A DNA stretch of 64,000 bases from Macrostomum hystrix (lineage: Eukaryota > Animalia > Platyhelminthes): NCBI GenBank assembly GCA_950097015.1, contig CATNEN010000011.1:5332001-5396000 (forward strand). The letters are read 5' to 3'. The position numbers and the translations under genes were made by a program. The notes under the pieces are model-generated. The model was not told the DNA's origin, did not search any database, and saw nothing but the letters and a program-made list of their open reading frames with translations. Below are positions 29,155 to 64,000 of this stretch, piece after piece (position 1 is the first letter of the stretch; every line of letters begins with the position of its first letter).

Positions 29155-29185
<31 letters not shown>

Positions 29186-36465: not shown

Positions 36466-36479
36466 CAAGTGAGACTCAC

Positions 36480-39181: not shown

Positions 39182-42100
39182 ATGGCCCAGGCGAGGCCAT
39201 TGCCACCTATTCCCAACTCAGCAGAGCTGTCAAGTCGTGTCATGGGTGGCGTTGCACTGCGCAATGCCCGCTCTGATCTGCTGGAGGCGATCCGCGAGAG
39301 TCGCCAACTTGACTTCGCAGACCTGCTAGAGCTAGACTTGTCTGCAAAGTACAAACTTGTTGACGCTCGCTCAGCTTTGGCGCGAGATAAAAAATCAGCG
39401 GAAGATGTCAAGCGAAATTGTTTGTACCTGCGCAACAAGCTCAAACACCTGCTGCATCCGTTAAAGGACAGGCCGCCAGACTGGAATGAGATGCAGACAA
39501 ATTTCTGCCAGTACCTACCAGGCGTTGAGCAACTACTCCAACGAATCGGCTTTGTGCAGCAGGGCAGCTTGTACGTCATTACACAGCAGACGCTGTCTCA
39601 GGAGGCATTGGCCGACACTCTGGTGGATTTATACTTGCTGGCTGAAGAGCTGACGCAGGTTATCAGGGGCACTCATCCACTGGGTGCCAAGCTTCTCCCC
39701 GCTGGCGGCCAAAAACCCAATGGACCCACCGCTGGTATTCATGAAAAGATGAACATAATGCAGCAGAAGCTCAACCAGATGTGTGACTTATGCGGCGAGA
39801 CGTCGGCCACGATTGTCTGCTTGGAGAGCCACTGCTCGAAGAAGCGCCTTTGCGAAAATTGCGATTCTCGCTGGCACAACCATCCGGACAGGCGGGTGCA
39901 TAAGCGACGCAACATTGCCGCAGCTGCTGGCGTCAATGCTGTTAAGCTAATTCCTCCGAATGCGATTGCTGCTGTTCAGCTGAACTCCGGCGTCATAAAA
40001 GTTGTGTCGAACAGCCAGGCAGTGAGCTACAAATCGCAGCTTGGACTGATGGGCAATCATGGCCCGGCTCGGCTGCAGCCGCCCACTTCGGCGAATGAAG
40101 CACAGGCTGTGAAATATCCGGAACCTGACGTTATTTTGCCAAGAAACTTTGCTCTCCCGAAGCCTCCGCCCAAACCAGACCAGCAGCAGAAGCATCAGTA
40201 TCAGCAGCAAAAAGATCAAAGTCAACAACAGCTAAATCTGCAGAGACAGCACCAAGAACAGCAGCAGCACCAAGAGCAACAAAAGCTACAGCGGCAGCAG
40301 CAGCAACAGCAGCAGCAGCAGCAGCTAGAACAACAAAAGCTACAGCTGCAGCGGCTGCAGCAAAAGCAGCAGCAAGAGCATAGTGAGGCAGACGAGCGTG
40401 TGATGAGGCTCAATGAATTTATGAAATCTTTGAAACCAATCGACGGAGATCGTGCTGTCTCCGTACCTGCCGGTGATATTTTTAGGCCACCGAGTCCCGA
40501 GGAGACATTCTATGACTGCCCAGAGCTACCAGAACCACAGCCAAAGGCACAACCGACGCCAAAACCTCGCCAGACAAAACCGGTAAAGCTGAGCCCGGTT
40601 CCAGCTACTCCAGTTGACGTGCATCGTGTGCGTCCTCAGTCGCCGCCTTCGCCTCCTAGGCCTGTGACGATCGAGTTGCCAGAAGATAACTGCTGGAATT
40701 GTCCTTTTTGCACAGCTCTTAATTCAATCGATGAAACTAAATTACTGAAGAGTAATCGCGTCGTTTGCGTGGTTTGCGGTCAAAGCAACGATAACAAAGA
40801 AATCATTGACAAGGTGAAGATGGCTAAGCAGCGGCAAGAAGAGAAGCCTTCATCGAACTTCGAGCAGCCTAAACAGGCCGCTGAACCAGTGCAAGTACCT
40901 TCAGGTGCGGAGCAGGTTTTATCTAATGATCAGGAGTGGTCGTGCTCTGCGTGCACTTTGCTGAACCCGAATTCTCGGAACAAATGCTCGGCGTGCGAAA
41001 GCGATCGCCCAATTTTCAATTATGCAAAAAGAGGCCCAGCTAAAGCAAGGCCGGCAATAGCCCGTCTGCAAAGCCCCAAGGCTCAAGCTGCTGCAAATCT
41101 GCAGTTGATTCAGTTGCTGAAAGACATTGAGACTGCTGGAACAGATGGTCGCCTGGCCCAGCTCTATCTGGTGACAACTGCTGATGAAGAAACCCCGTCT
41201 GAAGTTGGATTCCATGGTTGGGAAAAAAAGAATTGGCCAGATCTGATCGAGCAGATTGGCCGCGACGTTGCTAGAGCTTTGCAGGAGATGCACGCAGGCG
41301 TGGCTAACGTCGCGACGCGTCCTTCTTTTGACGACCTCGCAGCGTCTGTGCTGGAAAATCCGTGTGACCTTGAGAACGCTATTCAGGTTTGCGCTCAGCG
41401 GCATGTCCAGAAAGTGGCTTGGATTGCCAGGCACTGTCCGGAGTTGCTGCAGTCAGTTGAAGTAGACATTGATCTGCAAAATGATCTTTCAAAAGTATTC
41501 CAGGCTGCCAACGAACAGGCGTTTAAATACTTTGCGGAACACTTGTTTTCTAAGAACGCTGCTAAGGCCCCTGCGGCACCAATATTTCGAAAAATGAACT
41601 CAAGTGAAGCTGCGCACTACTGTCTTATGGCAGAGTTCGATTTAAGGAAATTTAACGATGCTGAAACGCTGTTTCACTTAATGCGTGAGACGGAATTTGA
41701 GAAATACGACATTGAAGATCTTGCTGAGGCTGCTAAGAACTGCGGTGAAAGCTGCGACTATATTGACTTGGCGAGAAAATACTTAAATAATCAGTGCAGC
41801 GCATGTCTTAGTGAATATCCAAAGCATAAGCTGCTTCCAATGGCCTCATGCCAGTGCGAGCTCTGCCTTGAGTGTTTTTACAATTTCGTCACAGAAAATG
41901 CTCGCAACAATAAACATGTGACCGATCTTCATTGCAGAATGTGTGAAACACCAAATGCAAACCAAGTGGAAGAGTTGGAGAGCCATTTTAGCATTCTCTT
42001 GCTTCAAATTAAGAGCTTCCAGCACCCGGAGCTCCGATTCGATGAAGCCGATGTTGATCTTGTTGAGAAGAAAATCACAGAGTGGAATCTCATTCGAGAC

Positions 42101-42883
42101 CCAAATTTTCGCTGGTGTAGCCAATGTGGCAATGGTCTGGTGCTGGGTGAGATCATGCTGGTCTTGAAGTTCCAGTGTCCTGATCCTGATTGTCTGGCCT
42201 ACACATGCAAGGACTGTGGGAAGCCTTGGGAAGACCAGCACGATGGCCTTGACTGTGAACAGTTTGAACAATGGCAAAGGGAAAATGATCCAGATTATCA
42301 GGAAAAGGGAATCGGATTCTTCCTGCAGGCCAACGGCATCCAATGTCCAAACTGTCGCTTCCAGTATGCTCTTGCCAAGGGTGGCTGTCTGCATTTCACC
42401 TGCAGGCAGTGCCGCTTCCAGTTTTGTGCCGGTTGCAACGGCCAATTTGAAATTGTTCAGGGCAGAGGCCTGAAGTGCAAACATCCAAGAGACTGTCTGT
42501 TCTACCTGAGAGACTTTGGCGTGGCTCGACTGCAGCAGCTGCTCATTGCTCACAAAGTAGAGTTCGAGACTGATATCCAGCCAGCAGTTGAGCATTGCGA
42601 AGTGATGGAGCAGAAGGAGATGGAAGGCAAGGGCTTATCTGATGAGCCGTGCGGAATCCAGGTGAATACTGGACAGGCGAACCTGTGCGAGAAGCACTAC
42701 ATTGAGTACCTTGTATCACTGGTGAACAAGCACAAGCTGGACCCTGTAAGCGTGATGGAGGAAGGTGAGCTGAGAGGAGTCTGCGTTCGGCACGACATCG
42801 ACTGTTCCGGTGTGGGCGAAAACAATTTGGTTGGACTGCAAGCTCTGATTCTTGGAAAAGTGCCGCTTAATGTGGGCAATTGA
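39182..42883 (+). CDS. RNF31: HOIP/RNF31 orthologue, full length (PUB, B-box, Q-rich, 2 NZF, UBA, RING1-IBR-RING2, LDD); array copy 1
   Basis: PUB-like N-terminus ending LAEELTQVIRGTHP; B-box CDLC...LCENCDSRWHNHPDRRVH; NZF WSCSACTLLNPNSRNKCSAC; IBR FRWCSQC; RING2 LAKGGCLHFTCRQC; LDD HPRDCLFYLRD...KHYIEYLVSLVNKHKLDP. Confidence 0.95.
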   Translation: MAQARPLPPIPNSAELSSRVMGGVALRNARSDLLEAIRESRQLDFADLLELDLSAKYKLVDARSALARDKKSAEDVKRNCLYLRNKLKHLLHPLKDRPPDWNEMQTNFCQYLPGVEQLLQRIGFVQQGSLYVITQQTLSQEALADTLVDLYLLAEELTQVIRGTHPLGAKLLPAGGQKPNGPTAGIHEKMNIMQQKLNQMCDLCGETSATIVCLESHCSKKRLCENCDSRWHNHPDRRVHKRRNIAAAAGVNAVKLIPPNAIAAVQLNSGVIKVVSNSQAVSYKSQLGLMGNHGPARLQPPTSANEAQAVKYPEPDVILPRNFALPKPPPKPDQQQKHQYQQQKDQSQQQLNLQRQHQEQQQHQEQQKLQRQQQQQQQQQQLEQQKLQLQRLQQKQQQEHSEADERVMRLNEFMKSLKPIDGDRAVSVPAGDIFRPPSPEETFYDCPELPEPQPKAQPTPKPRQTKPVKLSPVPATPVDVHRVRPQSPPSPPRPVTIELPEDNCWNCPFCTALNSIDETKLLKSNRVVCVVCGQSNDNKEIIDKVKMAKQRQEEKPSSNFEQPKQAAEPVQVPSGAEQVLSNDQEWSCSACTLLNPNSRNKCSACESDRPIFNYAKRGPAKARPAIARLQSPKAQAAANLQLIQLLKDIETAGTDGRLAQLYLVTTADEETPSEVGFHGWEKKNWPDLIEQIGRDVARALQEMHAGVANVATRPSFDDLAASVLENPCDLENAIQVCAQRHVQKVAWIARHCPELLQSVEVDIDLQNDLSKVFQAANEQAFKYFAEHLFSKNAAKAPAAPIFRKMNSSEAAHYCLMAEFDLRKFNDAETLFHLMRETEFEKYDIEDLAEAAKNCGESCDYIDLARKYLNNQCSACLSEYPKHKLLPMASCQCELCLECFYNFVTENARNNKHVTDLHCRMCETPNANQVEELESHFSILLLQIKSFQHPELRFDEADVDLVEKKITEWNLIRDPNFRWCSQCGNGLVLGEIMLVLKFQCPDPDCLAYTCKDCGKPWEDQHDGLDCEQFEQWQRENDPDYQEKGIGFFLQANGIQCPNCRFQYALAKGGCLHFTCRQCRFQFCAGCNGQFEIVQGRGLKCKHPRDCLFYLRDFGVARLQQLLIAHKVEFETDIQPAVEHCEVMEQKEMEGKGLSDEPCGIQVNTGQANLCEKHYIEYLVSLVNKHKLDPVSVMEEGELRGVCVRHDIDCSGVGENNLVGLQALILGKVPLNVGN

Positions 42884-43209
42884 AGTCTTCAGTGTTTTCA
42901 GATTGTTAAATATTTCCACGAAATCGAAACCGGAATTACAATTCTATTTCATCGACTCGTCATACTCGTCATACTCGTCACACAAAGACATTTTTGTCAA
43001 GCCTTTCGCTTCGTTTTTTTTATCTGACTTGACTTACTCCAGACACGTTCTGTCGTTATTGTCCTTTTTTATACAGCGCCGATTTGTTTCTGCTTCATGG
43101 TTCCCTTTTTGCTGGCTATCTGCCGCGCACTCTAAATTCCTGCCTGGACTTTTAATCATCGCTCATATGGCCTAGTTGTGGATAGGTAATAATTGTGTCA
43201 GCTTGTAGC

Positions 43210-43720
43210 TGATACGAAGCTTGTAGCTTTCACGAAGCACAGTCGATACCCTTAGCTTCATTGGCAGAAGTTTCTAATGATCCAGTTGTACTAATACCAG
43301 CTGATAATTTCAGTTAAAAAGTTCAAAATCGACTGTAACATTTTCGTATTGAGTCCAGGTAAAGAAGAATGATTATCATTATTCAAGAATTTATTGAATT
43401 TACACAAGATTTATCGACTATTAATTGTCTTTATAGCAGCATCATAAACATGTCCGCATAAAAGTTGAGGTTCAGTTTTATTGTTTAGTTAAGTCCACAA
43501 TGTTTTCCGATAAACTAAAGGCTTTCGATAATCACAATTTTTTTATCAAGATACAATTTATCTAATATTATAAACGAATTGAAAAACTGCCTATCTCTTT
43601 ACCATTCCAAACGTTGTACTTTTCCCATATATTGTCTGGTGTTTCTGTCGATGTCTTTGAAATATTTTCTTTAATTTTAGTAGCCAAATTCTCTTATTGT
43701 GTCGATGGTTCCACTTTGCT
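43210..43720 (-). mobile_element. Possible decayed Penelope-like element fragment
   Basis: The minus strand translates with stops to KIVIIESL*FIGKHCGLN*, resembling the GIY-YIG tail LxIxESLYIxxxxPxLN. Weak evidence. Confidence 0.35.
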
Positions 43721-44129
43721 ATGATTATTTCTTATCCAAATTCTTACAAAAATGTATTTATTTTTATAAAAAATTACTCTAGAGAAGCATACCTTTCTGC
43801 CGCCTGTGTCTAGTTCTACATGAAGTCAATAAATGCGAAAGCAAATACAGATGACGCAAGTACTTTTCATTCTGATTAACTTCACCATCTTAAATAAGCG
43901 CTAGAAATCTCATTTACTCGTCATTTAGGTACCCCGTAGCCTTAATCTTTATTTCTCAATCGGACTTCGTAATCCTGAAGCAGAGATCTCACAATTAAAC
44001 AATTGTTGCTATGGCACAAATGTTCTAGATCCAAAAAGGAGAGATCCCAAAACGTAAATAATGTATACCAAAATATTCAGACAGCGATCTCACAATACTG
44101 AAAGCAGATCCCGCATTCATGAAAGCAGA

Positions 44130-44675
44130 GATCCCACAGTCCTGAATCAGACATCCCACAGTCCTGAATCAGACATCCCATAATCCTGAATCAAAGATCC
44201 CACAGTCCTGAATCAGACATCCCATAATCCTGAATCAAAGATCCCACAGTCCTGAATCAGACATCCCATAATCCTGAATCAAAGATCCCACAGTCCTGAA
44301 TCAAACATCCCACAGTCCTGAATCAGACATCCCATAATCCTGAATCAAAGATCCCACAGTCCTGAATCAGACATCCCACAGTCCTGAATCAGACATCCCA
44401 TAATCCTGAATCAAAGATCCCACAGTCCTGAATCAGACATCCCACAGTCCTGAATCAAAGATCCCACAATCCTGAATCAGACATCCCACAGTCCTGAATC
44501 AGACATCCCATAATCCTGAATCAAAGATCCCACAGTCCTGAATCAGACATTCCATAATCATGAATCAAAGATCCCACAGTCCTGAATCAGACATCCCACA
44601 GTCCTGAATCAGACATCCCACAGTCCTGAATCAGACATCTCACAGTCCTGAATCAGACATCCCACAGTCCTGAAA
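44130..44675. repeat. 22-bp minisatellite (ATCCCACAGTCCTGAATCAGAC)
   Basis: About 24 units. Confidence 0.95.
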
Positions 44676-44769
44676 TCTCGTAATTTTAAGTCTAATATAT
44701 AGTGTTCCGGATATATTGATGCCGTTGCCCTAAAATAATAGTCTAGATTCTTATTAACTTGCCTTTCAG

Positions 44770-46674
44770 GCTGCAGATGCTAGCAAACGCGGCGCTTTGT
44801 CGCCTCGCCGCCCGAAGCTGGGTGTCGCTGATCAGCGCGCCAGCTGGCGTTGTCGCCACTGCACCTTCGAAAACCGTCTGGCTGAGACGAAACGAGCTCC
44901 CGTATCGGGCCGCCTCATTTGCGGCGTCTGCGGCAAGTCGTCCGGGCGCAACGGCTCTAACCTGGCTGCTGCGACTACTGCAGCTGAAACAGTCAGTCCT
45001 GTTGAAGATGGCGACTGTCCGCTCTGCCTGGAGTCGCATCGGCTGCTGCTGGCAATTCCTCTGTGCGGCTGCCGAGTCTGCTGCGACTGTCTGCGCCGAT
45101 TCGTTAGTGTAGGCCTGCGCAGCCACAGCTCCGTGACGCGCCTGGCCTGTCCGTTGTGCGACCGGCCGGATCCGGACACCCTTGCCGACGCCGAATGCGA
45201 GTACTTTCCGCAGCTGCGGAGCCTCCTTGCGCCTCGGCTGGAGCCGGAGATGCTGCGTCTGCTAGACGAGAGGCTGCGCGACTGGCGACTGGAGCTGAGC
45301 CAGAACTTCATGTGGTGCAGCGGTTGCGCCTTCGGCTTCGAAGTTGACGTCGACATTCGGGTGTCCAAAGTGCGCTGCCCGCACTGCGGCAAGGAGACGT
45401 GCAGGAAGTGCGGCCAGGCCTGGCACGAGAAGCACCGTGGCGTGAGCTGCCAGCAGTTCGGGTCGTGGCTGCAGCGGACTGACTTGGCACAGCGCGGTCT
45501 GACGCAGTTCCTTGAGAGCCGAGGCAGCAAGTGCCCGAAGTGCGGCTTCCAGTTCGAGCTGTCTCGTGGCGGCTGTCTTCACCTGAAGTGCTTGGAGTGC
45601 AGCGCGGAGTTCTGCAGCGACTGCGGCGGCCTGTTTGTTCGCACTGAGAGCAAGGGCCTGCACTGCCAGCACGGCTCGGAGTGCATCGAGAAGTTCAGAG
45701 ACTGGCCGATCAAGCGGCTGCGGCAGGCGGCGTCAGAGCGGGGCGTTCAGCTGACGATGTCGGGCGCAGCTGGGAGCTCCGGCGGTCGGTGCCGCCTCCA
45801 GGAGCAGAAGGAGACGAGCAGCGGTCTTTCGGACGTGGAGTGCGGCAGGCCGGCGGTCGAGGCCGGGCTGTGCGAGGCGCACTTTAAGGAGGCCCTCGTC
45901 AGCGCCATGCGGCGGCCTGACCGGCGGCTGTCGCTGCCGACCTTGGCTGAGGCGTCTGCGGCCAAGCAGCCCTGTGAGGCTGCCCTGTCACCAGACTTGA
46001 TCCAGATGATGGCTCGCCTGCCGCCGCCGCTTCAACCAACTTCTGCGCCGCAGCAACGCCCATCAGCTGCTCAGCGGGAGTCGTGGGTGTGCAGCCTATG
46101 CCGGTCTGTGAACTCTCCGGGACCCCAAGGTTCTCGCGCCAGCTGCCAGCTGTGCGACTCGCCCGCCTTCTCTGATGGGCCGTCACTTACGGCCCCGATG
46201 CCGCCGCCGCCGCCGCCTCCCATGGCGCCTTCTTCACTGCGTTATCTGTCCTCACCTGTTATTAGCTGCTTGGCAAGATCGCCTTCGGCTAACGGACTAT
46301 CTCGTCCGCCGCTGCCGACGCCTCAGTCTCTGAATCAAATTCAGCGCCAGCAGCAGCAGTTTCAAGGCCCACAAATACAACCGCTACAGTTTTGGTCATC
46401 TTCGCAAACAATGATGCCAATGCAGCCGTTTCAGCCAATGCAGCCGTTTCAGCCAGTGCAGCCATTTCAGCCAGTGCAGCCGTTTCAGCCAATGCAGCCG
46501 TTTCAGCCAATGCAGCCGTTTCAGCCAGTGCAGCCGTTTCAGTCAGTGGAGCCGTTTCAGCCAATGCCTCCTTTGATGTCTTTTGAAGCAATGCAGTCAT
46601 CACAACCAATGCAGCCGGTGCATTTAATGTGTTCGAGTCAGTCTTCGAAGCAGAGCCTAGCCAAGCCAAACTAA
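44770..46674 (+). CDS. HOIP-like copy 2: NZF-RING1-IBR-RING2-LDD-NZF plus Pro/Gln tail; no in-frame ATG at its start
   Basis: WRCRHCTFEN...CGVC, CPLC RING1, FMWCSGC IBR, LSRGGCLHLKC, CIEKFRDW, QEQKET...CEAHFKEAL, WVCSLC NZF. The frame is open from the phase-0 acceptor TTTCAG at 44769. Confidence 0.88.
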   Translation, partial: AADASKRGALSPRRPKLGVADQRASWRCRHCTFENRLAETKRAPVSGRLICGVCGKSSGRNGSNLAAATTAAETVSPVEDGDCPLCLESHRLLLAIPLCGCRVCCDCLRRFVSVGLRSHSSVTRLACPLCDRPDPDTLADAECEYFPQLRSLLAPRLEPEMLRLLDERLRDWRLELSQNFMWCSGCAFGFEVDVDIRVSKVRCPHCGKETCRKCGQAWHEKHRGVSCQQFGSWLQRTDLAQRGLTQFLESRGSKCPKCGFQFELSRGGCLHLKCLECSAEFCSDCGGLFVRTESKGLHCQHGSECIEKFRDWPIKRLRQAASERGVQLTMSGAAGSSGGRCRLQEQKETSSGLSDVECGRPAVEAGLCEAHFKEALVSAMRRPDRRLSLPTLAEASAAKQPCEAALSPDLIQMMARLPPPLQPTSAPQQRPSAAQRESWVCSLCRSVNSPGPQGSRASCQLCDSPAFSDGPSLTAPMPPPPPPPMAPSSLRYLSSPVISCLARSPSANGLSRPPLPTPQSLNQIQRQQQQFQGPQIQPLQFWSSSQTMMPMQPFQPMQPFQPVQPFQPVQPFQPMQPFQPMQPFQPVQPFQSVEPFQPMPPLMSFEAMQSSQPMQPVHLMCSSQSSKQSLAKPN

Positions 46675-46994
46675 CCAGCTGGCATTAGCAATGAAAACCA
46701 AGTTCTTAATAACCTTTGACAATATACACTCGCGTTCTTGCTCCGTGACAATGCTCGTATAAGATATTTTTTATTGAATTTGACTCAAAATAGCAAACTT
46801 GACTAGATATATTCATTGCAATTTAAAATCTCTCAGTGTGCAAAAGTATTTTTTCCTCTTGCTTGACTGATTTGTTTATCATCATAATGTTTTCATTTTA
46901 TATGATTCTTTATTTCATTTATTTTTTCTACTACTCGCATATAAATTTAGGTTGTGCTGGAAATGTGCATTTTAAGACTTATGACTCTTAATTG

Positions 46995-49900: not shown

Positions 49901-50230
49901 GGAGTTCAATTGGGGATCCAAGGTATTCAATTGGGGATAATTCACTTGAGGATCCTAGGAGTTCAATTGGGGATAATTCAATTGGGGATCCAAGGAGTTC
50001 AATTGGGGATAATTCAATTGGGGATCCAAGGAGTTCAATTGGGGATAATTCAATTGGGGATCCAAGGAGTTCAATTGGGGATCCAATGAGTTCAATTGGG
50101 GATAATTCAATTGGGGATCCAAGGAGTTCAATTGGGGATAATTCAATTGGGGATCCAAGGAGTTCAATTGGGGATAATTCAATTGGGGATCCAAGGAGTT
50201 CAATTGGGGATCCAAGGAGTTCAATTGAGG
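46995..50230. repeat. 36-bp composite satellite (TTCAATTGGGGATAA + TTCAATTGGGGATCCAAGGAG), about 3.2 kb
   Basis: 15-bp and 21-bp subunits in varying order; ORFs with 12-aa period are artefacts. Confidence 0.98.
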
Positions 50231-52719: not shown

Positions 52720-52776
52720 GCGTACATTAGCTGCGTACATTAGCTGCGTACATTAGCTGCGTACATTAGCTGCGTA
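52720..52776. repeat. 13-bp tandem repeat (CGTACATTAGCTG), about 4.5 copies
   Basis: Direct inspection. Confidence 0.9.
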
Positions 52777-53394
52777 AATTAATTCAGAACAATTTATTGT
52801 TCTTGTTTGGCCCCAAGAAAAGTATATTCGGTCCTTACAATTGATCTGTTTGAACTAATCATTTCTTATTATATGTTTTCTGAATCATGCACATATGAAT
52901 GTAGTTATATTTTGTTCCACTGTGTCCCGTCTTGTATTTTGTGTGGCAATTTTTCGCTTTTATTTCAGTAACTAGTTTTACTATTACTATTACTATTACT
53001 TTACTACCAGTTTTACTACTGGTTGCTATAATAATTCCCTGATTAGGACATCTTATTAAGTATCCATTGAGCTGGCTGTGCTTTATCGCTCGTATTTTGT
53101 CCAGAATAAATCGCCATTAGATTATATCGCATTATCCAGAATTGGTTCAACGATCATAGCCATTGTTGATACGAGTGCAATCCCGTATGTTTTGTCTTTA
53201 ACATTAAGCTACATTCCCGTGAGCTATTTAAAAATAAAGAATTTGTTCAATTTGTTAAACAGAAGTGGAGAGTATTTAATTTATCGAATGTATTTTCGTC
53301 CTTTTATGTTTCACCCAGGGCCTTATAAAAAATAAGAATAATTGCAGGAGGGCTGTGGGCAATGGCACATCGTTTGGTGGCACTAGACCCGCAG

Positions 53395-53497
53395 CCCGAG
53401 GAGGAAATTCTGCCCATTTCGCAGACTCCTGAGCACACGCGCACACAAATACCGATTTCTCATCGTCAGGCAGGGTACACACTCATTGTGCCTTGGA
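53395..53497 (-). mobile_element. SINE family A, 3-prime half
   Basis: Minus strand TCCAAGGCACAATGAGTGTGTACCCTGCCTGACGATGAGAAA...GCTCAGGAGTCTGCGAAATGGGCAGAATTT. Confidence 0.7.
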
Positions 53498-53602
53498 TTA
53501 CAAATTAGAAAACAAAAATTCTAGACTCTAAAAATTAGTATTTATATTTTAGTCATAATATTACACTATCTACGCACTTCAGATTCTCCAGAGCCATAAG
53601 GC

Positions 53603-55667: not shown

Positions 55668-56542
55668 AAGCGATAAAAGTTACAGACTGGCATGCTGAGT
55701 GTAAAGGTCTTGTTGGTTCTTCACAATATTAAAGAATGCTTTTTGAACTTCCAGTGCTATTTTTACAAGCCACCATAAGTAAACTAGATTAATTTCTACT
55801 CAAGTCATTTCTTCTCTTTTAGAGTTGCGATTTTACAACTTAAAAATGAATAACCCTGAGTACAAATTTTCGTGTAAAATTCGTTTTCTTGCCCTTTTAA
55901 GTCTTTAATTTATGATTTTGAAGATTTTAGTCACAATCATACTATTGTTATGCTTTTCCAACTGTACTTGTAAAGGTCACTGGAAAGTATTCAAGCGTTA
56001 GTGTTGTTTTTGCAACACTAATTATAGAATGCCAGGCTATTCTATAGCCACATGCCAATGCAGATTTGTCATTTTTTGGACTTTCTATATATTTTTATTC
56101 AAGCTGTCTTTTTATTTTATGCTTCTCAGTGTATAATTATGTACTAGCAGCTATTCTATGATATTTTGTGTTGGATTTTGTAAAAAGACCCTCCAGTATT
56201 TGTGATTATATTATTTTTTTTACAGTTTTTTGTAGAGATATATTTTCAAGGAAAAATTATATTGTACTTGAAATTTGTCTTTCTTTTTTCTTTGTTTGTA
56301 GTGAACGAATTTTTAAAGATAGTTCCCTACTCATAATTGAGTCCCATTTAAGTTTATGTTTAATTCCTTGCTGCTTTAGCGGTGTAATACGTAAACTAAC
56401 CAGCGCATTGTAAGGCAACTCTCAGGCGAAGCTTGTTAGAAATAAGTCTAGTTACCTCTTACCTAGGTGACTTCTGATTATCTAAACAATGGCCAACACA
56501 TCTTGCTGGTTGCAGAGCCTCAACTGATCAGCTTCGCAGTTG

Positions 56543-58744
56543 ATGGCCGCTTTTGAGCCGAATCGCCAACAGGAGAGAGAGCCACAGAAGAGGCTGCCGA
56601 GATGCAGCATCTGCCACAGACGAGGCGCCTGCCTGGAGGCTGGCTGCAGCTTCGGTCTGATGTGCGAGTGCTGTCATTCCGACTGGCACAGTATCTGCCA
56701 GCACCGAGTGGAGCGGCTGCCGCTTCCTCAGGCAATGCCTCGCTACGACCAGTGGCTGACTGAGAGGCTGACGGAGGTGAAACAGTTGAGCGACTTCAGG
56801 CAGTTCTCAGACTCTGATCTCATTGACTCCATTCAGTCATGCTGTGGACAGGCGTTTGATGCAATGGTACTTCTGAGTCACCTGAGGAGCCGGTGTGGCA
56901 AGTGCTCCAGTCCGATGCCTAAGCACAAACTGGTTGGCATGGCAACGTGTGAGTGCGAGCTTTGCTCTGCGTGCTACCGCGGCTTTCTGTCTGGTCTGCC
57001 GGACCAACTTAGATGTCCAGCCTGTGGAGTGGCATTCTCTGCTGACCCAGTCGCTGCGAACCTGACGCAGATTCTTGTCCGCGAAATGGAGTGCGAAATA
57101 GGCAAAGATGATACCTTAAGGTTGCTGAAAATGCTTGAGGACTGGGGAGAAGGAGCAGGAGAGCAGGATAGAATGCTAAGAGAGCAACAGGAGACTCAAC
57201 AGAGAGAGCAACAGGAGACTCTACAGAGAGAGCAACAGGAGACTCAACAGAGAGAGAAGCCCTTTTCATATGAAGAGCAGCAACGATTTCTAAACAAACT
57301 GCAGCATTTTAAAAAGAAAGACATTGCAGGTGGTGAAATTCAGCAGGTGAGACAGCAGACAGAGCAACAGGAGAGACAGCACAGAGAGCAACAGGAGAGA
57401 CTGCAGAGAGAGCAACAGGAGAGACTACAGAGAGAGCAACAGGAGAGACTGCAGAGAGAGCAGCAGGAGAGACTACAGAGAGAGCAACAGGAGACTCTAC
57501 AGAGAGAGCAACAGGAGACTCAACAGAGAGAGCAACAGGAGAGACTGCAGAAAGAGCAACATGAGAGACTTCAGAAGAAGCAACAGGAGAGACTGCAGAA
57601 AGAGCAACTGGAGAGACTGCAGAAAGAGCAACAGGAGAGACTGCAGAAAGAGCAACAGGAGAGACTGCAGAAAGAGCAACTGGAGAGACTGCAGAAAGAG
57701 CAACAGGAGAGACTGCAGAAAGAGCATCAGGAGAGACTGCAGAAAGAGCAACAGGAAAGACTGCAGAAAGAGCAACTGGAGAGACTGCAGAAAGAGCATC
57801 AGGAGAGACTGCAGAAAGAGCAACAGGAAAGACTGCAGAAAGAGCAACTGGAGAGACTGCAGAAAGACCAACAGGAGAGACTGCAGAAAGAGCATCAGGA
57901 GAGACTGCAGAAAGAGCAACAGGAGAGACTACAGAGAGAGCAACAGGAGAGACTGCAGAAAGAGCAACAGGAGAGACTGCAGAAAGAGAAACAGGAGAGA
58001 CTGCAGAGAGAGCAACAGGAGAGACTGCAGAAAGAGCAACAGGAGAGACTGCAGACTGCGCAGACTCACCAGTGTGCCGCTAGTTATAGTAAACCTGGCC
58101 CAATTAAAACTCTCGGAAAGCTGCAAAGTCAGATGATGGAGTTGCTGCAATCTGAGCTGAGGTGTCCCAGGTGCAGTCGCTGCTTCGAGAGAGTCTCCAA
58201 ATCTGGTATTTCTACATTTCGCTGCTCCTGCAAGCATGAATTTTGTCCGTTTTGTTTGTCACCCTTCATCGGCTCTCACGATGGCTGCAGAATTCGTGGA
58301 TTTCATGTGCACCACCAGAGACAGTGCTTCTTCTCACTGAAGCAAGTGAAGCAGTCCACATTGATCGGCTTGCTTAGTTCTAAGAAAGTAGCCATCAATT
58401 CTGACTGCTCGTCAACAAAGAAGCAATGTCAGATTCTTGATCTCAAGCAGGAGAAAAATCAGTTGGTCGTGTTGCCATGTAACGAGAAAGTAACGCACAA
58501 TCAGCCAGGTGTATGCGACAGACACTACTGTGAGTACCTGATTCAGCTCATCAATGCGCACAGACTTGACCTGGTAGATGTTGCCAAAGAGAATGAGCTG
58601 CTGGAGATGTTCGAGAGATTCAGTTTGAGTGTTCCAGTTCCAGTAGTTTCAATGTCAAGTCCTACAGCTGCAAATAAGCAGCAAAAGTTGGCTATCTATC
58701 GAGAGCAGTTTAAGAAATTGGTGCCTCCATTCAGACCATGGTAA
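56543..58744 (+). CDS. HOIP-like copy 5: B-box-like, RING1, 8-aa repeat replacing IBR, RING2 lacking the catalytic Cys, LDD
   Basis: RING1 CGKC...MATCECELCSAC...CPAC; 28 EQQERLQ(K/R) repeats; CPRCSRCFERVSKSGISTFRCSC; LDD CDRHYCEYLIQLINAHRLD. Confidence 0.88.
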   Translation: MAAFEPNRQQEREPQKRLPRCSICHRRGACLEAGCSFGLMCECCHSDWHSICQHRVERLPLPQAMPRYDQWLTERLTEVKQLSDFRQFSDSDLIDSIQSCCGQAFDAMVLLSHLRSRCGKCSSPMPKHKLVGMATCECELCSACYRGFLSGLPDQLRCPACGVAFSADPVAANLTQILVREMECEIGKDDTLRLLKMLEDWGEGAGEQDRMLREQQETQQREQQETLQREQQETQQREKPFSYEEQQRFLNKLQHFKKKDIAGGEIQQVRQQTEQQERQHREQQERLQREQQERLQREQQERLQREQQERLQREQQETLQREQQETQQREQQERLQKEQHERLQKKQQERLQKEQLERLQKEQQERLQKEQQERLQKEQLERLQKEQQERLQKEHQERLQKEQQERLQKEQLERLQKEHQERLQKEQQERLQKEQLERLQKDQQERLQKEHQERLQKEQQERLQREQQERLQKEQQERLQKEKQERLQREQQERLQKEQQERLQTAQTHQCAASYSKPGPIKTLGKLQSQMMELLQSELRCPRCSRCFERVSKSGISTFRCSCKHEFCPFCLSPFIGSHDGCRIRGFHVHHQRQCFFSLKQVKQSTLIGLLSSKKVAINSDCSSTKKQCQILDLKQEKNQLVVLPCNEKVTHNQPGVCDRHYCEYLIQLINAHRLDLVDVAKENELLEMFERFSLSVPVPVVSMSSPTAANKQQKLAIYREQFKKLVPPFRPW

Positions 58745-59049: not shown

Positions 59050-59730
59050 AGCGTCTTATTTCACGATAAGAAGAGAAGAGATGGTTCAATGGTGTAGAAC
59101 TGTGCTAAAGGCTCACAAGACTCACAGAACTCCCGGGGCTTACATATCGAATTATTATAATCGAATTAAAAACTCTGCTATCCGGGACCATTTGCTAGGT
59201 TGCGATAGTTGTTGTAATAAGGAGCCACTTGAACTGTTCAAAGTTGTTGACACGTGTAGGCAAGATTACAAACTGACCATTCTTGAAGCCATGTACATCA
59301 AGGCCCTCAAGCCAAACCTTAATGTCCAATTAGCGGGGAACGGTTCAAGCCAACAGCTCCAAGTGTTCTGACGTATGAGGCACGCTCTCTCTGTGCTGTG
59401 TGTGCGTTCCTCTCCAACCTCTTGATCATGGTTCGCCTTGTGACCTGCCCATCGGACTTTAACTCACAATGTACAACAACCTACTTTTAAATACCTGCGT
59501 TTTCGTTTTTCAATAAATCGACCCTGTCCATCGGACTTTAACTCACAATGTACAACAACCTACTTTTAAACACCTGCGTTTTCGTTTTTCAATAAATCGA
59601 CCCTGTCCATCGGACTTTAACTCTCAATGTACAACAACCTACTTTTAAACACCTGCGTTTTCGTTTTTTAATAAATCGACCCTGACGATGTGCGCTTAGG
59701 ACGTAAAGCTTCGGAATTTTAAACATATGT
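59050..59730 (+). mobile_element. Penelope-like element 3-prime fragment (GIY-YIG tail plus pLTR-like tandem repeats)
   Basis: SAIRDHLLGCDSC...FKVVD...KLTILEAMYIKALKPNLNVQL is typical of PLE endonuclease C-termini. Confidence 0.8.
59449..59686. repeat. 79-bp tandem repeat, 3 copies
   Basis: CCATCGGACTTTAAC starts at 59449, 59528 and 59607. Confidence 0.95.
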
Positions 59731-60459
59731 TGGCAATTTCATTTCTGTTCCTGTTGCTTATTAACGGAGTTACCTTACCAAATAATAAATTCGTAACAGG
59801 GTCGATGTTTCATATTTTTTATTTTAAGTCAAGCTGTGTTGTCCTTTTGAAAACTTTTCAGATTTTCTTGTCCTGACAACATTTATGATGAAAATTTAGA
59901 ATAATTGTCATAGTTCTTTGCTTAGAACTTAGCGGAAACACAGGAAGTTGTAGAAAACCGCAGAGCATAAGATCTTAGAAGCACCTCTTCCTCGCTCCTA
60001 CTTATCCCCGTTCCTAAAGATACAGATTTTTTTAATTGAGAAAATTTTTCTTGTTGAAACAATATCTTTAAATAGCGACTGACGTCAGTGACGTATCTGA
60101 ACAGACACTTCTACGTTGTCCCAGAGTGATAATTAAGGTACGAACTGCAGTAAAAATAGTTATTGCACTTTTAGTGTGATATAAAACGAGGCTAGTCACG
60201 GCAGAAAATCGCGTGCGTGGCGTGGCAGTGAATGTACATTCAATGTACACACGCAGCCTGGGTGCTGGTAGGGCTGAGAGGAAACTGACTTAACGGCTTC
60301 TAAGGCGGGCAAGGCAATTTCTCAGAGTGTCTTCACTCACAATGAAAACTTGTGAATCTCAATAAATACCTCTGCTGAATGTATTTATTAGAAGCAGACT
60401 TTAGTGAAAGTGAGCGGTTTCAAACTCGAACGCAACCAACCTCTAATCTCTGTTGCAGC

Positions 60460-62088
60460 ATGAGCGGCACTGTCGAAGCTGGCTCTCATGTCACCTGGCA
60501 ATGTGGCCAATGCACCTGCGACAATGACTTCTTGGGCTTCTCCCAGCCTGTCAGCGGTGGCACCATTCACTGCGAGGTGTGCGAAACTGGTAACAGTTTA
60601 AGGAACATAGCGAATCAGGTGAACGCCAGAACTGGTCAGTGCTTGTGCATCAGGTGCACACTACTCAATGACAGAGGCAGACATTACTGTTCTGCCTGCG
60701 GCTCATGGCTTGTATTTGTGTCAGAGCCAGAGCAGCTATTCCTATCAGATTTTTCCAGTACGAGCTCTGTGAGTTCCGCTTCTGAGCTGTTCGAAGTCCA
60801 CCATCACGAGACGGATAATGAGTCTGAGCTAGTTGCCCTGATGACTGAGTTCCACTTAATTAAGCTTGAACATGCGTCGAATTTTCGCAGCCTCCGTGCT
60901 CAGGCCGGGTTTCGCGACTGCAACCCGCTGGACCTGGCTGAGGCGGTTCGCAGCTGTGGCGATCAGCCAGACTTTGTGGACTTTGTTAGCGCCCACCTGA
61001 ACAACCAGTGCCCAATCTGCTTCGATAACTTTCCCAGACACAAGATGCTCCAGATGGCCTCCTGCCAGTGCAAGCTCTGCTTCCTCTGCTTCCGCAACTT
61101 TGTCACCACCAGTCTGGACAACAATGACCACGTGTCGCATCTGCAGTGTCCGATCTGCAACACACCGGACTGTGAGGATGTCGGACAGTTGGAGACTCAC
61201 TTCCAGTTGCTGATGCTCCAAGTGACCACCTTGAATGATGCCGAGATCCGCTTCGATGCAGAGAAGGTCAGCGTCCTCGATCAGAGGCTTCGGGACTGGA
61301 ACTTGACGCGGGATCCGAGCTTTCGCTGGTGCAGCCACTGTCCAAACGGAGTCCGGCTGCCTACTCAGCTTCGAGGTCGCAAGTTCAGGTGCGACCAGTG
61401 CTTGAAGCACACGTGCAAAGACTGCAGGAAGCAATGGCAAGAGCAGCACGAGGGCATCGGGTGCGAGCAGTTCCAGCAGCGGCTGGTTGCGAATGACGCC
61501 GACTTTCAGGAGAGAGGCGTGGCTGCATTTCTACAGAGCAGCGGCATCGAGTGTCCGAAGTGCAAGTTCAAGTACGTGCTGGCGAAGGGTGGCTGCATGC
61601 ACTTTACCTGCAGGCAGTGCCGGGCTGAGTTCTGCTCAGGCTGTGGCGGCTTCTTCATCCGAGTGAACGGACGCGGGCTGATGTGCGAGCATCCGAGAGA
61701 CTGTCTGTACTACCTCAGAGACTTTGACGTTCGGAGCTTGCAGAAACTGCTGAGCGACCACGGCGTTCGGCACGAGACTTTGGCTGAGCAGTCCGCTGAC
61801 GGTGGCGTCTGCGGAGTGATGGAGCAGAAGGAGACTGTGAGTGGCAGTCTGGTGGATGAAGCCTGCGGCAGAGCAGTTGAGGGGCAATCTAGTTTGTGCA
61901 CAAAGCACTACACAGAGTACCTGGTGTCTCTGATCAACAGACACCGCCTGGACCCAGTAGAAGTGATGGACGCTGCCCTGCTGAGGGAGGTTTGCAGGCG
62001 TCACGGCATTAGCGTTGATGGCAAGATTTCAAATGATTGTGCCGCTCTTCGGGGCTTGATTTCCCAACGAGTTCCATTGCGCCGTTGA
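60460..62088 (+). CDS. HOIP-like copy 6: 2 NZF-RING1-IBR-RING2-LDD
   Basis: ATG at 60460 after the acceptor CTGTTGCAG. Contains WQCGQC...CEVC, CIRCTLLN...CSAC, LAKGGCMHFTC, HPRDCLYYLRD, and ends VPLRR*. Confidence 0.92.
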   Translation: MSGTVEAGSHVTWQCGQCTCDNDFLGFSQPVSGGTIHCEVCETGNSLRNIANQVNARTGQCLCIRCTLLNDRGRHYCSACGSWLVFVSEPEQLFLSDFSSTSSVSSASELFEVHHHETDNESELVALMTEFHLIKLEHASNFRSLRAQAGFRDCNPLDLAEAVRSCGDQPDFVDFVSAHLNNQCPICFDNFPRHKMLQMASCQCKLCFLCFRNFVTTSLDNNDHVSHLQCPICNTPDCEDVGQLETHFQLLMLQVTTLNDAEIRFDAEKVSVLDQRLRDWNLTRDPSFRWCSHCPNGVRLPTQLRGRKFRCDQCLKHTCKDCRKQWQEQHEGIGCEQFQQRLVANDADFQERGVAAFLQSSGIECPKCKFKYVLAKGGCMHFTCRQCRAEFCSGCGGFFIRVNGRGLMCEHPRDCLYYLRDFDVRSLQKLLSDHGVRHETLAEQSADGGVCGVMEQKETVSGSLVDEACGRAVEGQSSLCTKHYTEYLVSLINRHRLDPVEVMDAALLREVCRRHGISVDGKISNDCAALRGLISQRVPLRR

Positions 62089-62582
62089 GTGTCCGAAATG
62101 TTTACTATTCTCCAACGATGAGGGTTTCCAGCTTTTTTGTCAACAAAACTCTCAAACAGAAATGTGTAAGGCGCTTTTTTTAGTTAATATCAATCTTAAT
62201 TAATAGCTCGTATTTTGTTGGTGCTCAGATCTTTTGTCTTGCAATCTGGTCATTTATTCTAGCGTAAAAAGTTTTATGTACTAGCAATACTTTTTTCATG
62301 AAAAATAATTTTTTAAGATGTGATACTCATGGCTAGTGTATTGACAGTACAATGTTTATTTACAAATAAATTCAAAGTTGTTCTTTGATCATGTTCTGAA
62401 ATATTATTTGTTACATAATTTCTTTTGTTCTGATTATTTATTTCCTGATATGTTTAAACTAGTAAATTACGGACTTATTAGGACTAATAGATTGCGGAAG
62501 TGAATGACATTGTCGACTAGGCAAGCCAGGTCTCATTCACTTCTATTTGAACTCTTGCAGATCTGAAGTCCTGAATTTGAGC

Positions 62583-64000
62583 ATGGCCTCAGCGCAGGTG
62601 TATTGCAGCTTCTGCGGTGACAACCCGGCCGCTGTCTATTGCGCCACTCCTGGCTGCAGCAGGAATGTGCTGTGCAATGGCTGCGACAAAATCTGGCACG
62701 GTCATCCTAATCGGAAGGGGCATATTACAGAGCCTTATAATCATCAGCAGCAACAGGCAAAGGCTGACACTCCTCTTCCACCGCCGCGATCGCCAAATCG
62801 TCCCTACCCACCGCCGCAGCGACCACCTCCCCCGCGGCCGTCATCGGCCGGCTGGCAGTGCCAGCACTGCACCTTCTTGAATGAGCCGCCTCCGACTGGT
62901 TCGGCTAAGAAAATTTGCGGCATGTGCGGCAAAACTCATGGACTGCCCCCTGCGATTGGTACAGGGAACCATCCTGATTCAAACTCCGAATGTGTAAGCT
63001 CTGAGATTGATCAAAGACCGCCAGCTCATGAGCAAACTGTTGGTACAACTGGAAGACCTGAAGACTCTGCTACAAATGTAGATGAGCTTAAAAAACAGTA
63101 TCTGCAGCATCAACAGAGACAGGGGGAAGAGAAGCCCTTTTCATATGAAGAGCAGCAACGATTTCTAAACGAACTGCAGCATTTGAAAAAGAAAGACATT
63201 GCAGGTGGTGAAATTCAGCAGGTGAGACAGCAGACAGAGCAACAGGAGAGACAGCACAGAGAGCAACAGGAGAGACTGCAGAGAGAGCAACAGGAGAGAC
63301 TGCAGAGAGAGCAACAGGAGAGACTGCAGAGAGAGCAACAGGAAAGACTACAGAGAAAGCAACAGGAGAGACTGCAGAGAGAGCAACAGGAGAGACAGCA
63401 GAGAGAGCAACAGGTGAGACAGCAGAGAGAGCAACAGGAGAGACAGCAGAGAGAGCAACAGGAGAGACTGCAGAGAGAGCAACAGGAGAGACTGCAGAGA
63501 GAGCAACAGGAGAGACTGCAGAAAGAGAAACAGGAGAGACTGCAGAGAGAGCAACAGGAGAGACAGCAGAGAGAGCAACAGGAGAGACTGCAGAAAGAGA
63601 AACAGGAGAGACTGCAGAGAGAGCAGCAGGAGAGACTGCAGAAAGGGCAACAGGAGAGACTGCAGAAAGGGCAACAGGAGAGACTGCAGAAAGAGCAGCA
63701 GGAGAGACTGCAGAGAGAGCAGCAGGAGAGACTGCAGAAAGAGCAGCAGGAGAGACAGCATTCGCAAATTCACTCTCCTTCAGACAATAGATCCGGCAAG
63801 TACGCTATTCGACAATCTGGTGGATCACATCAGAGCATCTGTGGCAGCTCCAGCAGCTGGGTTTGTGTTCACTGCACGCTTGAGAATCCAGTACCAGTTG
63901 AGCAGGGCTCTACACGAGCAGTTTGCAGCGCCTGCAACCGTTCCTCTGAACTTAATAGTGCCACATCCAATGGTGCCATGGCAGCCCGCAGTGAGACAAT
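62583..64000 (+). CDS. HOIP-like copy 7, N-terminal part (B-box, NZF, EQQERLQR repeat, NZF); open to the window end
   Basis: Translated by hand because it is absent from the ORF track (no stop in the window): MASAQVYCSFCGDNPAAVYCATPGCSRNVLCNGCDKIWHGHPNRKGH, WQCQHCTFLN...CGMCGKT, KPFSYEEQQRFL... repeat block, WVCVHCTLEN...CSACNRS. Confidence 0.85.
   Translation, partial: MASAQVYCSFCGDNPAAVYCATPGCSRNVLCNGCDKIWHGHPNRKGHITEPYNHQQQQAKADTPLPPPRSPNRPYPPPQRPPPPRPSSAGWQCQHCTFLNEPPPTGSAKKICGMCGKTHGLPPAIGTGNHPDSNSECVSSEIDQRPPAHEQTVGTTGRPEDSATNVDELKKQYLQHQQRQGEEKPFSYEEQQRFLNELQHLKKKDIAGGEIQQVRQQTEQQERQHREQQERLQREQQERLQREQQERLQREQQERLQRKQQERLQREQQERQQREQQVRQQREQQERQQREQQERLQREQQERLQREQQERLQKEKQERLQREQQERQQREQQERLQKEKQERLQREQQERLQKGQQERLQKGQQERLQKEQQERLQREQQERLQKEQQERQHSQIHSPSDNRSGKYAIRQSGGSHQSICGSSSSWVCVHCTLENPVPVEQGSTRAVCSACNRSSELNSATSNGAMAARSET

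Follow-up and report, generated by a model that had tools for sequence, protein, structure and literature searches.

A transcribed tandem cluster of at least seven HOIP-derived genes in the flatworm Macrostomum hystrix

The analysed window, a 64 000-nucleotide stretch of the Macrostomum hystrix genome, contains a tandem cluster of at least seven HOIP-derived genes that is real and transcribed. HOIP (RNF31) is, to our knowledge, the only enzyme known to build Met1-linked (linear) ubiquitin chains, a specificity that rests on the LDD and has been studied almost wholly in the human protein. The genes are probably a long-standing set of HOIP (RNF31/LUBEL) paralogues, confined to the Macrostomum lineage, that has been kept and is expressed. 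A literature search found no paper on arrays of HOIP/RNF31 genes, nor any on flatworm HOIP, in line with an earlier reading made from the sequence alone (the sequence-only reading), which knew of no account of such an array. The apparent shortened enzymes and catalytically dead copies of the cluster were likewise found described in no paper.

The seven co-oriented HOIP/RNF31-like open reading frames (ORFs; c1–c7) lie on the forward strand between positions 39182 and 64000: c1 at 39182–42883 (1233 aa), c2 at 44758–46674, c3 at 50452–52554, c4 (main ORF) at 53823–55667, c5 at 56528–58744, c6 at 60379–62088 and c7 from 62508 to at least 63998, running off the end of the window. No HOIP-like matches were found in positions 1–39000. 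The HOIP-specific LDD (Pfam PF18091) follows RING/IBR modules in six of the seven ORFs (c1–c6; E values from 2e-24 to 3e-9, all exceeding the curated cut-off of 23 bits) and is accompanied by IBR/IBR_1 matches except in c5, from which the IBR is absent. These matches, together with that of the RBR-LDD region of c1 to human RNF31 structures (E = 6e-79), bear out the initial description of seven co-oriented HOIP-derived ORFs in tandem, six of them with an LDD. The mix of modules assigned at that stage stands in part: the architectures do differ, but for a PUB domain in c1 no test reached significance, the support for its UBA region is weak and c5 has neither an IBR nor the catalytic Cys/His. RING1–IBR–RING2 is complete in c1, c2, c3 and c6, and also in c4 apart from one IBR cysteine that is replaced by phenylalanine. 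The NZF motif W-x-C-x2-C...N...C-x2-C occurs twice each in c1, c2 and c7, once in c3, and once plus a variant in c6. Protein identity between most copies is below 40%.

Human residue numbers were taken from the 5edv alignment. The catalytic Cys885 and His887 (GGC-x-H) are present in c1, c2, c3, c4 and c6 and lost in c5 (SGIST). Arg935 and Asp936 (YLRDW), which in the human HOIP structure bind the acceptor ubiquitin, appear as YLRDF in c1, c4 and c6, as KFRDW in c2 and c3 and as K-Q in c5. The motif HPRDC was considered for the acceptor-site Arg/Asp and dropped, as counting from Cys885 in the 5edv alignment puts both residues in YLRDW; subfamily C (c2 and c3) therefore retains both.

Contig NIVC01000691.1 of M. 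lignano carries a syntenic array with about ten ORFs of this kind. The tree contains four subfamilies with 97–100% support, each with members from both species: A (c1), B (c6 and c4), C (c2 and c3) and D (c5 and probably c7). A single Macrostomum clade is compatible with the data when 72 other animal HOIP/LUBEL representatives are included (p-AU 0.90), and the apparent outsider to this clade, P0187, is an M. lignano protein itself. Subfamily D has no counterpart outside M. lignano among 1.84 billion cluster representatives. By these sequence comparisons the expansion is specific to the Macrostomum lineage, as had been proposed. A tblastx comparison of the flank (window positions 1–39181) with the M. 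lignano region gave microsatellite matches only, so that it is by its genes that the locus is judged orthologous. The GenBank annotation of M. lignano omits several genes of the array, which may have gone unnoticed because the annotation misses genes, at least one of them without an ATG of its own.

The subfamily A copy, c1 (39182–42883), is the full-length canonical HOIP orthologue. It consists of a PUB-like N-terminal region (unconfirmed), a B-box-like zinc finger, a Q-rich stretch, two NZFs, a UBA-like region, RING1, IBR, RING2 and LDD, with GGC-L-H and YLRD retained, and fish RNF31 is colinear with it from the NZF through the LDD. Pfam recognizes the LDD (2e-24), IBR_1, IBR and a RanBP zinc finger (the RanBP2-type NZF, PF00641; E = 6e-6, slightly under the cut-off). 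The M. lignano orthologue, P0001, is 55–64% identical, and 100% of sampled words from the 3' part (41700–42880) are present in RNA runs X1–X4. The Pfam search gave no match to a PUB domain, which is a docking site for OTULIN, SPATA2 and p97. In hhalign the N-terminus is colinear with fish PUB regions, weakly (E = 0.012, probability 4%), and the AF2 model of this region (pLDDT 50) finds the HOIP PUB as its top Foldseek matches at only E = 0.4 and TM 0.2; no counterpart was seen in c2–c7. A UBA pair, which in HOIP binds HOIL-1L and SHARPIN, is weakly suggested in c1 by sequence: PF16678 gave no match in c1 itself and is matched by P0001 (E = 5e-5), and c1 is colinear with the fish UBA region. 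In c2–c6 there is neither a PF16678 match nor room for a UBA pair.

In subfamily B, c6 (60379–62088) is made up of two NZFs, a UBA-tail, RING1, IBR, RING2 and LDD (Pfam 3e-23), with the second NZF being the motif variant that matches NZF2 of c1. No catalytic or acceptor-site residue has been lost, and c6 has kept the conserved C-terminal VPL tail. Its M. lignano orthologue, P0121 (66–68% identical), shares a contig with the orthologue of c1. In the RNA, a contig carrying variants specific to c6 extends into c6-specific 3' sequence at a depth of ∼30. The other member, c4 (53582–55667 from its spliced-leader acceptor), is chimeric and probably decaying. An 87-residue NZF ORF (53603–53866) does not share a reading frame with the main ORF. 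The main ORF has its first ATG at 53964 and joins a D-type RING1 to a c6-type UBA-tail/RBR/LDD core, with a C-terminal tail that is novel. Its N-terminal part shows 37% identity to the RING1 that lies internally in M. lignano D genes, and positions 54468–55575 are 98.2% identical to c6; the altered IBR cysteine lies in KDFRKQW (KDCRKQW in c6). A small intron uniting the two frames was rejected because both overlap on the same nucleotides at ∼53860 and the RNA contig, an exact and gap-free match to 53582–54526 that carries the spliced leader at a depth of ∼10, is colinear with the genome.

The two subfamily C copies share 88.4% DNA identity over 793 bp and are separated by a 3.2 kb satellite (46990–50227) with 21, 36 and 108 bp units, identified by Tandem Repeats Finder (TRF) and self-BLAST. 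c2 (44770–46674 from a predicted spliced-leader acceptor) contains an NZF, RING1, IBR, RING2, a shortened LDD, a second NZF and a Pro/Gln-rich repeat tail; the NZF motifs are at ORF residues 30 and 443 and Pfam matches IBR, IBR_1 and LDD (3e-9, over profile positions 2–71). c3 (50635–52554; acceptor at 50635, ATG at 50653) contains an NZF, a linker, RING1, IBR, RING2, a shortened LDD and a C-terminal NZF-like zinc ribbon. In both, the LDD match spans only about positions 2–72 of the 92 in the profile. Upstream of RING1, c2 is without an in-frame ATG, and an acceptor (tttcag|GCT) lies in frame at 44769|44770; in its M. lignano orthologue an ATG is missing as well, and the acceptor in frame there reads CAG|GCC. 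From this arrangement, the start codon of c2 is probably donated by the spliced leader at 44769|44770. At their 5' end, at 50635, the RNA contigs of c3 bear the Macrostomum spliced leader, and they are unspliced as far as 52722. A joint in one RNA run (51467>51613) was dismissed as a splice and attributed to an assembler chimera of c2 and c3 mRNAs, since its ends are TT..AG, one side has 26 letters, the depth is 4.8 and a loose contig end of c2-specific sequence at 51442 adjoins it.

Subfamily D comprises c5 (56543–58744) and probably c7 (62583–64000, incomplete at the window edge). c5 is a pseudo-ligase with a B-box-like finger, UBA-tail, RING1, EQQERLQK repeats, RING2 and LDD (Pfam 2e-13), in which ∼30 copies of the repeat (24 bp unit, 57344–58055; TRF) stand where the IBR would be; no counterpart of this replacement was found among the HOIP structures matched. 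GGC.H has become SGIST and YLRD has become SLKQ (Arg935/Asp936 to Lys/Gln), and in the alignment three M. lignano D genes show the same catalytic and acceptor losses. The AF2 model of c5 has a pLDDT of 84, and every one of its 18 best PDB matches is a HOIP RING2-LDD, for the most part with TM 0.6–0.75. Zinc ligands and LDD helices are invariant across the subfamily. As far as the window end, c7 contains a B-box (ANCHR-like in Pfam, 1e-3), a Pro-rich stretch, an NZF, ∼23 EQQERLQR copies (63219–63760; TRF) that are 89–93% identical to the c5 repeat, and a further NZF. Its N-terminus shares 38% identity with the D2 ORF of M. lignano (43138–46146), a likeness by which c7 is probably D-type. Much as first inferred, c1 is the one canonical full-length copy, several others are short and lack the N-terminal regulatory modules, and c5 at least is catalytically dead.

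RNA contigs from four runs cover c3, c4 and c6 with copy-specific variants, and a stretch of c2 as well. Spliced-leader acceptors are seen in them at 50635 (c3) and 53582 (c4), and RNA and genome are colinear over c3 and the 5' part of c4; in these tested portions there are no cis-introns, which agrees with the sequence-only reading of essentially intronless genes. The identity of the leader was checked against PMC8629364 and the supplement of PMC10468722; in the RNA contigs it ends in ...GCAT followed by the exon, and the terminal G of the published ...GCATG is not seen. An operon-like arrangement, in which the co-oriented genes derive from one or a few polycistronic precursors resolved by spliced-leader trans-splicing, would be compatible with the paralogue-cluster explanation and is a tentative possibility. 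The acceptors on c3 and c4, the near-unbroken RNA contig cover from the end of c3 to 53272, and the short gaps, some after repeat removal (c6–c7 ∼0.5 kb, c4–c5 ∼0.9 kb and c3–c4 ∼1.0 kb), are in its favour, given that operons in M. lignano are defined by a repeat-adjusted gap of <1 kb and contain 15% of genes (PMC8629364). However, no contig bridges two genes, contig depth is unequal (∼10 for c4 and ∼26–30 for c3 and c6) and other gaps are 1.6–1.9 kb.

Between-species dN/dS is ∼0.06–0.22 in all four subfamilies (0.19–0.25 for c5 against M. lignano) and 0.23–0.49 between recent paralogues, values that are biased downwards because only alignment windows of ≥40% identity were scored and between-species dS is saturated (∼1.5). 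Since the subfamilies are older than the divergence from M. lignano and orthologue dN/dS is low, the genes are conserved and not, as the sequence-only reading had it, rapidly diversifying; what turns over fast is copy number and module composition, through chimeras, probable gene conversion and the decay of c4. The same values bear on the view, in outline that of the sequence-only reading, that the cluster is an immune locus in an arms race, diversifying rapidly under pathogen pressure, with dead copies as decoys that draw off effectors aimed at HOIP. Pathogens are known to target HOIP in mammals, copy number and architecture have turned over between the two species, dN/dS is relaxed in the young duplicates and catalytically dead copies are retained, all of which would fit; the age of the subfamilies and the purifying selection on orthologues speak against it, as does the lack of any immune-gene link to the cluster found within the window, and we regard this view as unlikely.

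The preferred explanation of an old paralogue cluster would have it evolve by tandem duplication, exon-free module shuffling and gene conversion, with the four subfamilies already present before the split from M. lignano. From the observed architectures, residue states and expression we infer the following activities, regulation and roles. Subfamily A would be the canonical full-length enzyme. Subfamily B, as a short NZF-RBR-LDD form without the UBA pair and N-terminal modules, is predicted to make Met1-linked chains free of UBA autoinhibition and partner control. UBA autoinhibition is known only for human HOIP. Relative to vertebrates, the LDD loop of the Macrostomum A/B copies (c1, c4 and c6, with the orthologues in M. 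lignano) is shorter and lacks two cysteines, so that Met1 specificity is an assumption even for c1. Subfamily C, with Cys885, His887, Arg935 and Asp936 kept, a remodelled and shortened LDD and TF-type NZFs on either side of the catalytic core, may make a different product. Subfamily D, in which the RING1 and RING2-LDD fold is kept and the catalytic and acceptor residues are lost, is predicted to act without catalysis, as a scaffold or regulator. Having no cis-introns where tested, the genes are matured by spliced-leader trans-splicing, as seen for c3 and c4, with the leader AUG probably serving as the start codon of c2 and its orthologue. A stronger version, rather improbable as a whole, makes these a system of paralogues in which B would be partner-free enzymes, C would build a different product, for instance chains of another linkage, chains with branches or a product on an acceptor other than ubiquitin, and D would replace the regulatory or scaffold role of HOIL-1L/SHARPIN.

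It is very unlikely that c1 is the one functional HOIP in a gene graveyard of transcribed but functionless copies drifting to pseudogenes. The frameshift, missing IBR zinc ligand and missing conserved C-terminal tail of c4, the lack of an ATG in c2 and the lost catalytic residues of c5 could be read in this way, but ORFs of 570–1230 codons have stayed open in both species despite the saturated dS, dN/dS is well below 1 in all subfamilies including D, the zinc ligands and LDD helices of D have not varied, the missing ATG of c2 is common to its orthologue and comes with an in-frame trans-splice acceptor, and copies 2, 3, 4 and 6 are contained in RNA contigs. An assembly artefact, with haplotypes or repeats mislaid in tandem, might be suspected from the 98% identity of c4 and c6 over 1.1 kb, the 88% identity of c2 and c3 over 0.8 kb and the satellite-rich intergenic regions, but is extremely improbable given the low identity and unlike architectures of most copies, the 17–18 fixed differences and copy-specific flanks that separate the c4 and c6 RNA contigs, and the same array in the independent assembly of M. 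lignano. The copies are distinct in RNA and, among those covered by it (c1–c4 and c6), transcribed, and they do not evolve neutrally, contrary to the collapsed, silent and neutral copies that the sequence-only reading had named as grounds for giving up its proposal.

Compared with vertebrate HOIP, the catalytic subunit of LUBAC, c1 is colinear in the B-box-like finger, NZFs, UBA region, RING1-IBR-RING2 and LDD, its RBR-LDD is 46–48% identical and Cys885, His887, Arg935 and Asp936 are shared. Vertebrates have a single gene (two in many teleosts), in contrast to the tandem genes of Macrostomum, in which cis-introns are absent where tested, PUB is undetected by profile and the two-cysteine LDD loop of A/B is shortened. 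Drosophila LUBEL is, like the Macrostomum copies, an invertebrate HOIP orthologue, and forms linear chains in vitro (PMC5090701). Arthropod 'lubel-like' RBR-LDD proteins of 390–700 residues (ticks, wasp, beetles and spider) resemble B in lacking N-terminal modules; unlike the Macrostomum genes, some of them are annotated isoforms of a single gene (e.g. in the wasp), and our look-ups of them showed no tandem array, lost catalytic residues or repeat-replaced IBR. A precedent for a lineage-specific burst in a low-copy RBR E3 family is the expansion of ARI1 (Ariadne) in Caenorhabditis (PMC6288150), although ARI1 belongs to another RBR subfamily without an LDD. As a class, E3-derived pseudo-enzymes resemble D, which likewise keeps the fold and zinc ligands without the catalytic Cys/His and is under purifying selection; no published description of a HOIP-derived pseudo-ligase was found.

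The cluster offers natural variants kept by selection in two species: B free of partner modules, C with a variant LDD beside intact catalytic residues and D dead with its fold retained and its IBR exchanged for a charged repeat. These would allow one to probe which LDD features dictate linkage, the ancestry of UBA autoinhibition and the function of a pseudo-HOIP. M. lignano is amenable to RNAi and transgenesis and holds the orthologous array, so that these questions would be directly addressable there.

The 3′ part of the window contains seven long ORFs on the + strand (39182–64000; numbered c1–c7 from 5′ to 3′). The HOIP-specific LDD domain (Pfam PF18091) was detected in six of the seven ORFs with E values from 2e-24 to 3e-9, with IBR/IBR_1 matches ahead of it, and the RING1-IBR-RING2 (RBR)-LDD region of c1 matches crystal-structure chains of human RNF31 with an E value of 6e-79, which bears out the proposal of the sequence-only reading that these are seven co-oriented HOIP-derived ORFs, six of them with an LDD. 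The last ORF, c7 (62508–63998, + strand), runs past the end of the window and contains a B-box-like match and two NZF motifs. A tblastn search of the window with all copies found no HOIP-like sequence upstream of 39000; thus, c1 is the first HOIP-like gene inside the window. In database searches, c1 and c6 come closest to Macrostomum lignano proteins (61–68% identity), with fish RNF31 next (∼46%). A literature search turned up no publication that describes arrays of HOIP genes or deals with flatworm HOIP, in line with the earlier remark that no description of such an array was known. A precedent is ARI1 (PMC6288150), which is likewise an expanded RBR family in Caenorhabditis but a different one from HOIP.

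Elsewhere in the window, an NHL-repeat ORF (2749–4419) and a C2H2 zinc-finger ORF (29135–30394) are located on the minus strand, and many long ORFs in 1–39000 are merely translated tandem repeats (∼14900–16700, 20250–23140, 25640–26440 and 32680–36680). Within the cluster, most of the c2–c3 gap is a 3.2 kb satellite (46990–50227) with 21/36/108 bp units and ∼174 short units, a 22 bp × 25 array lies upstream of c2 (44126–44674) and a 79 bp × 3 array lies between c5 and c6 (59444–59684). These satellite arrays enlarge the intergenic distances of the cluster and may promote unequal exchange within it.

Phylogenetic analysis of the RBR-LDD region (IQ-TREE) places the copies in four groups, each containing both species: the full-length canonical group A (c1; support 100/98), the short NZF-RBR-LDD group B (c4 and c6; 97/98), group C with a shortened LDD and a further NZF (c2 and c3; 100/100) and group D, which has lost the catalytic Cys/His (c5 and probably c7; 100/100) and has a stem length of 2.75. 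When 72 other animal representatives are included, a single group (SH-aLRT 85) unites A, B and C with another two M. lignano proteins; the sole apparent outsider, P0187, is also from M. lignano. A constraint placing all Macrostomum sequences including D in a single clade was not rejected (p-AU 0.90), and the constrained tree scores above the free quick search. A profile of the D-type RING2-LDD, searched against 1.84 billion representatives, matched 181 clusters in all at an E value of 0.001; one of these, from M. lignano, scored 428 bits, and the next match (104 bits) and its followers are ordinary RNF31/LUBEL proteins of fish, an annelid and arthropods.

The M. lignano orthologues of c1 (P0001) and c6 (P0121) share one contig, NIVC01000691.1. 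The surrounding region, merged from four overlapping fetched stretches (56 kb with 179 bases missing), carries on one strand A1, C1, a 1328-residue fusion ORF with C-type and A-type RBR-LDD, D1, C3, B, a B-box fragment, D2 and two further B-box/NZF or D-like ORFs. The GenBank gene calls lack several of the ORFs in this array. Two C-type ORFs (L002:15969–18242 and L001:5750–7783, numbered within the fetched stretches) are uncalled as genes, with only a 75-residue product called inside the first, which was likely missed owing to the lack of an in-frame ATG before residue 194. Also missing is the fusion ORF (L002:19885–23543, continued in L003), an uninterrupted frame consisting of an NZF and a C-type RBR-LDD, an Ala/Glu/Arg repeat and an A-type NZF-UBA-RBR-LDD, i.e. 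two complete HOIP-like units in series. Two readings fit this ORF: a naturally occurring double ligase, or two genes joined by read-through.

Transcription was assessed using four RNA runs of 2020, with contigs placed on 50300–56299. These runs contain 70% of the sampled words of this stretch, a share close to the ∼65% of its length that c3 and c4 occupy, and 100% of those of the 3′ part of c1. RNA contigs on the window start with TGCGAAGACTCAATTTATTGCAT, which is the 3′ part of the 35 nt M. lignano spliced leader (PMC8629364) and also of the M. cliftonense and M. hystrix leaders (PMC10468722 supplement). The leader-bearing contigs begin at canonical trans-splice acceptors (slashes mark the junction), ...ttttcag/A at 50635 for c3 and ...cttcag/A at 53582 for c4, and are colinear with the genome over 50635–52722 in c3 and, with an exact match, over 53582–54526 in the c4-specific 5′ part. 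A deeper contig over 54497–55575 shows 17–18 differences from c4 and extends into sequence for the c6-specific C-terminus EVCRRHGISV, and is therefore c6 mRNA, while a loose contig end at 51442 encodes the c2-specific PDPDTLADAE. Thus, c2, c3, c4 and c6 are represented in RNA by contigs and c1 by its word share, so that these paralogues are not the untranscribed copies that the sequence-only reading had allowed for. The array is not an assembly artefact. No cis-intron was seen where RNA contigs were placed (50300–56299); a single joint of low depth, with TT..AG at its ends, is most readily explained as an assembler chimera of c2 and c3. RNA contigs also cover the c3–c4 intergenic region (52747–53500) at a depth of ∼15–48 and have loose ends at positions 53337 and 53341. 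They could represent an extended 3′ UTR of c3, a precursor produced by read-through, or a small transcript or repeat in its own right.

The start codon of c3 is at 50653, 18 nt past its acceptor. The c2 ORF has no in-frame ATG ahead of RING1 and has an in-frame acceptor, ...tttcag/GCT, at 44770; in its M. lignano orthologue the first in-frame Met is residue 194 and an in-frame acceptor, CAG/GCC, is present. Flatworm leaders end in AUG, which sometimes serves initiation according to the PMC10468722 supplement. Since both genes combine a missing ATG with an in-frame acceptor and the leaders end in AUG, we predict that the start codon of this pair is donated by the leader, with a c2 junction ...GCATG/GCTGCAGAT expected at 44770. 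The leader part of the contigs at 50635 and 53582 stops at ...TTGCAT, followed by the first A of the exon, whereas published leaders end in ...TTGCATG; the absence of the final G could reflect trimming by the tool or a real junction variant.

Between-species maximum-likelihood dN/dS values, scored only in windows of at least 40% identity and with saturated dS (∼1.5 against M. lignano), are 0.15–0.17 for A, 0.09–0.12 for B, 0.06–0.19 for C and 0.19–0.22 for D. The recent paralogues have values of 0.34–0.49 (c4/c6, with a dS of 0.08–0.10) and 0.23–0.45 (c2/c3). That ORFs of 570–1230 codons have stayed uninterrupted in the two species speaks against neutrality. Such ORFs, with the between-species range of 0.06–0.22, weigh against the neutral drift of the paralogues that had been envisaged as an alternative. 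Segments of c4 (54468–55575) and c6 (60880–61987) share 98.2% DNA identity, with unrelated flanks. The N-terminal part of c4 consists of a D-type NZF and RING1, with the NZF in an 87-residue ORF whose frame differs from that of the main ORF, where RNA matches the genome; the c4 IBR has a Cys-to-Phe change, and the conserved ...VPL... end is missing from the c4 tail. The c4 gene is a chimera and appears to be in decay. By their flanks, c2 corresponds to M. lignano C1 and c3 to C3, and the RING2-LDD cores of c2 and c3, unlike the flanks, group by species, as expected from gene conversion of the c2/c3 core. A 24 bp coding repeat (EQQERLQK/R) is common to c5 (∼30 copies, 57344–58055) and c7 (∼23 copies, 63219–63760). 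It places Glu at i and Arg/Lys at i+4, an arrangement typical of stable single α-helices, and may form a rigid spacer between RING1 and RING2 of c5.

Catalytic and acceptor-site residues were assigned by counting from Cys885 in the alignment with 5edv (human HOIP numbering), with His887 two residues on and Arg935/Asp936 within YLRDW. All four are kept in A and B, and also in C (GGCLHL and KFRDW), where HPRDC is changed to HGSEC and detectable similarity ends after the helix ...EALVSAMRR. The LDD loop that carries two cysteines in vertebrate and beetle HOIP is 8–10 residues shorter and without both cysteines in the Macrostomum A and B copies (42299–42880, 61510–62085 and 55000–55580 in the window), and the A, B and C copies have a new cysteine two residues ahead of the conserved His (C-x-H-x3-C). 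The LDD zinc site may have been rebuilt. In D copies of both species, Cys is replaced by I/Y/V, His by T/V and Arg-Asp by K-Q, with all zinc ligands and the C-terminal LDD helices invariant. An AF2 model of the C-terminal 206 residues of c5 (pLDDT 84, pTM 0.77) matches HOIP RING2-LDD structures only, with the top 18 all HOIP and most TM scores in the range 0.6–0.75.

In human HOIP, the RBR-LDD is active on its own, and autoinhibition by the UBA region lasts until HOIL-1L or SHARPIN is bound. By extension from the human enzyme, the B copies are expected to be Met1 ligases with constitutive competence that rely on their NZFs for recruitment. The C copies, because TF-type NZFs flank an intact active site and the LDD is changed, may bind existing chains and extend or branch them. 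The D copies should be unable to form a thioester and would act through binding.
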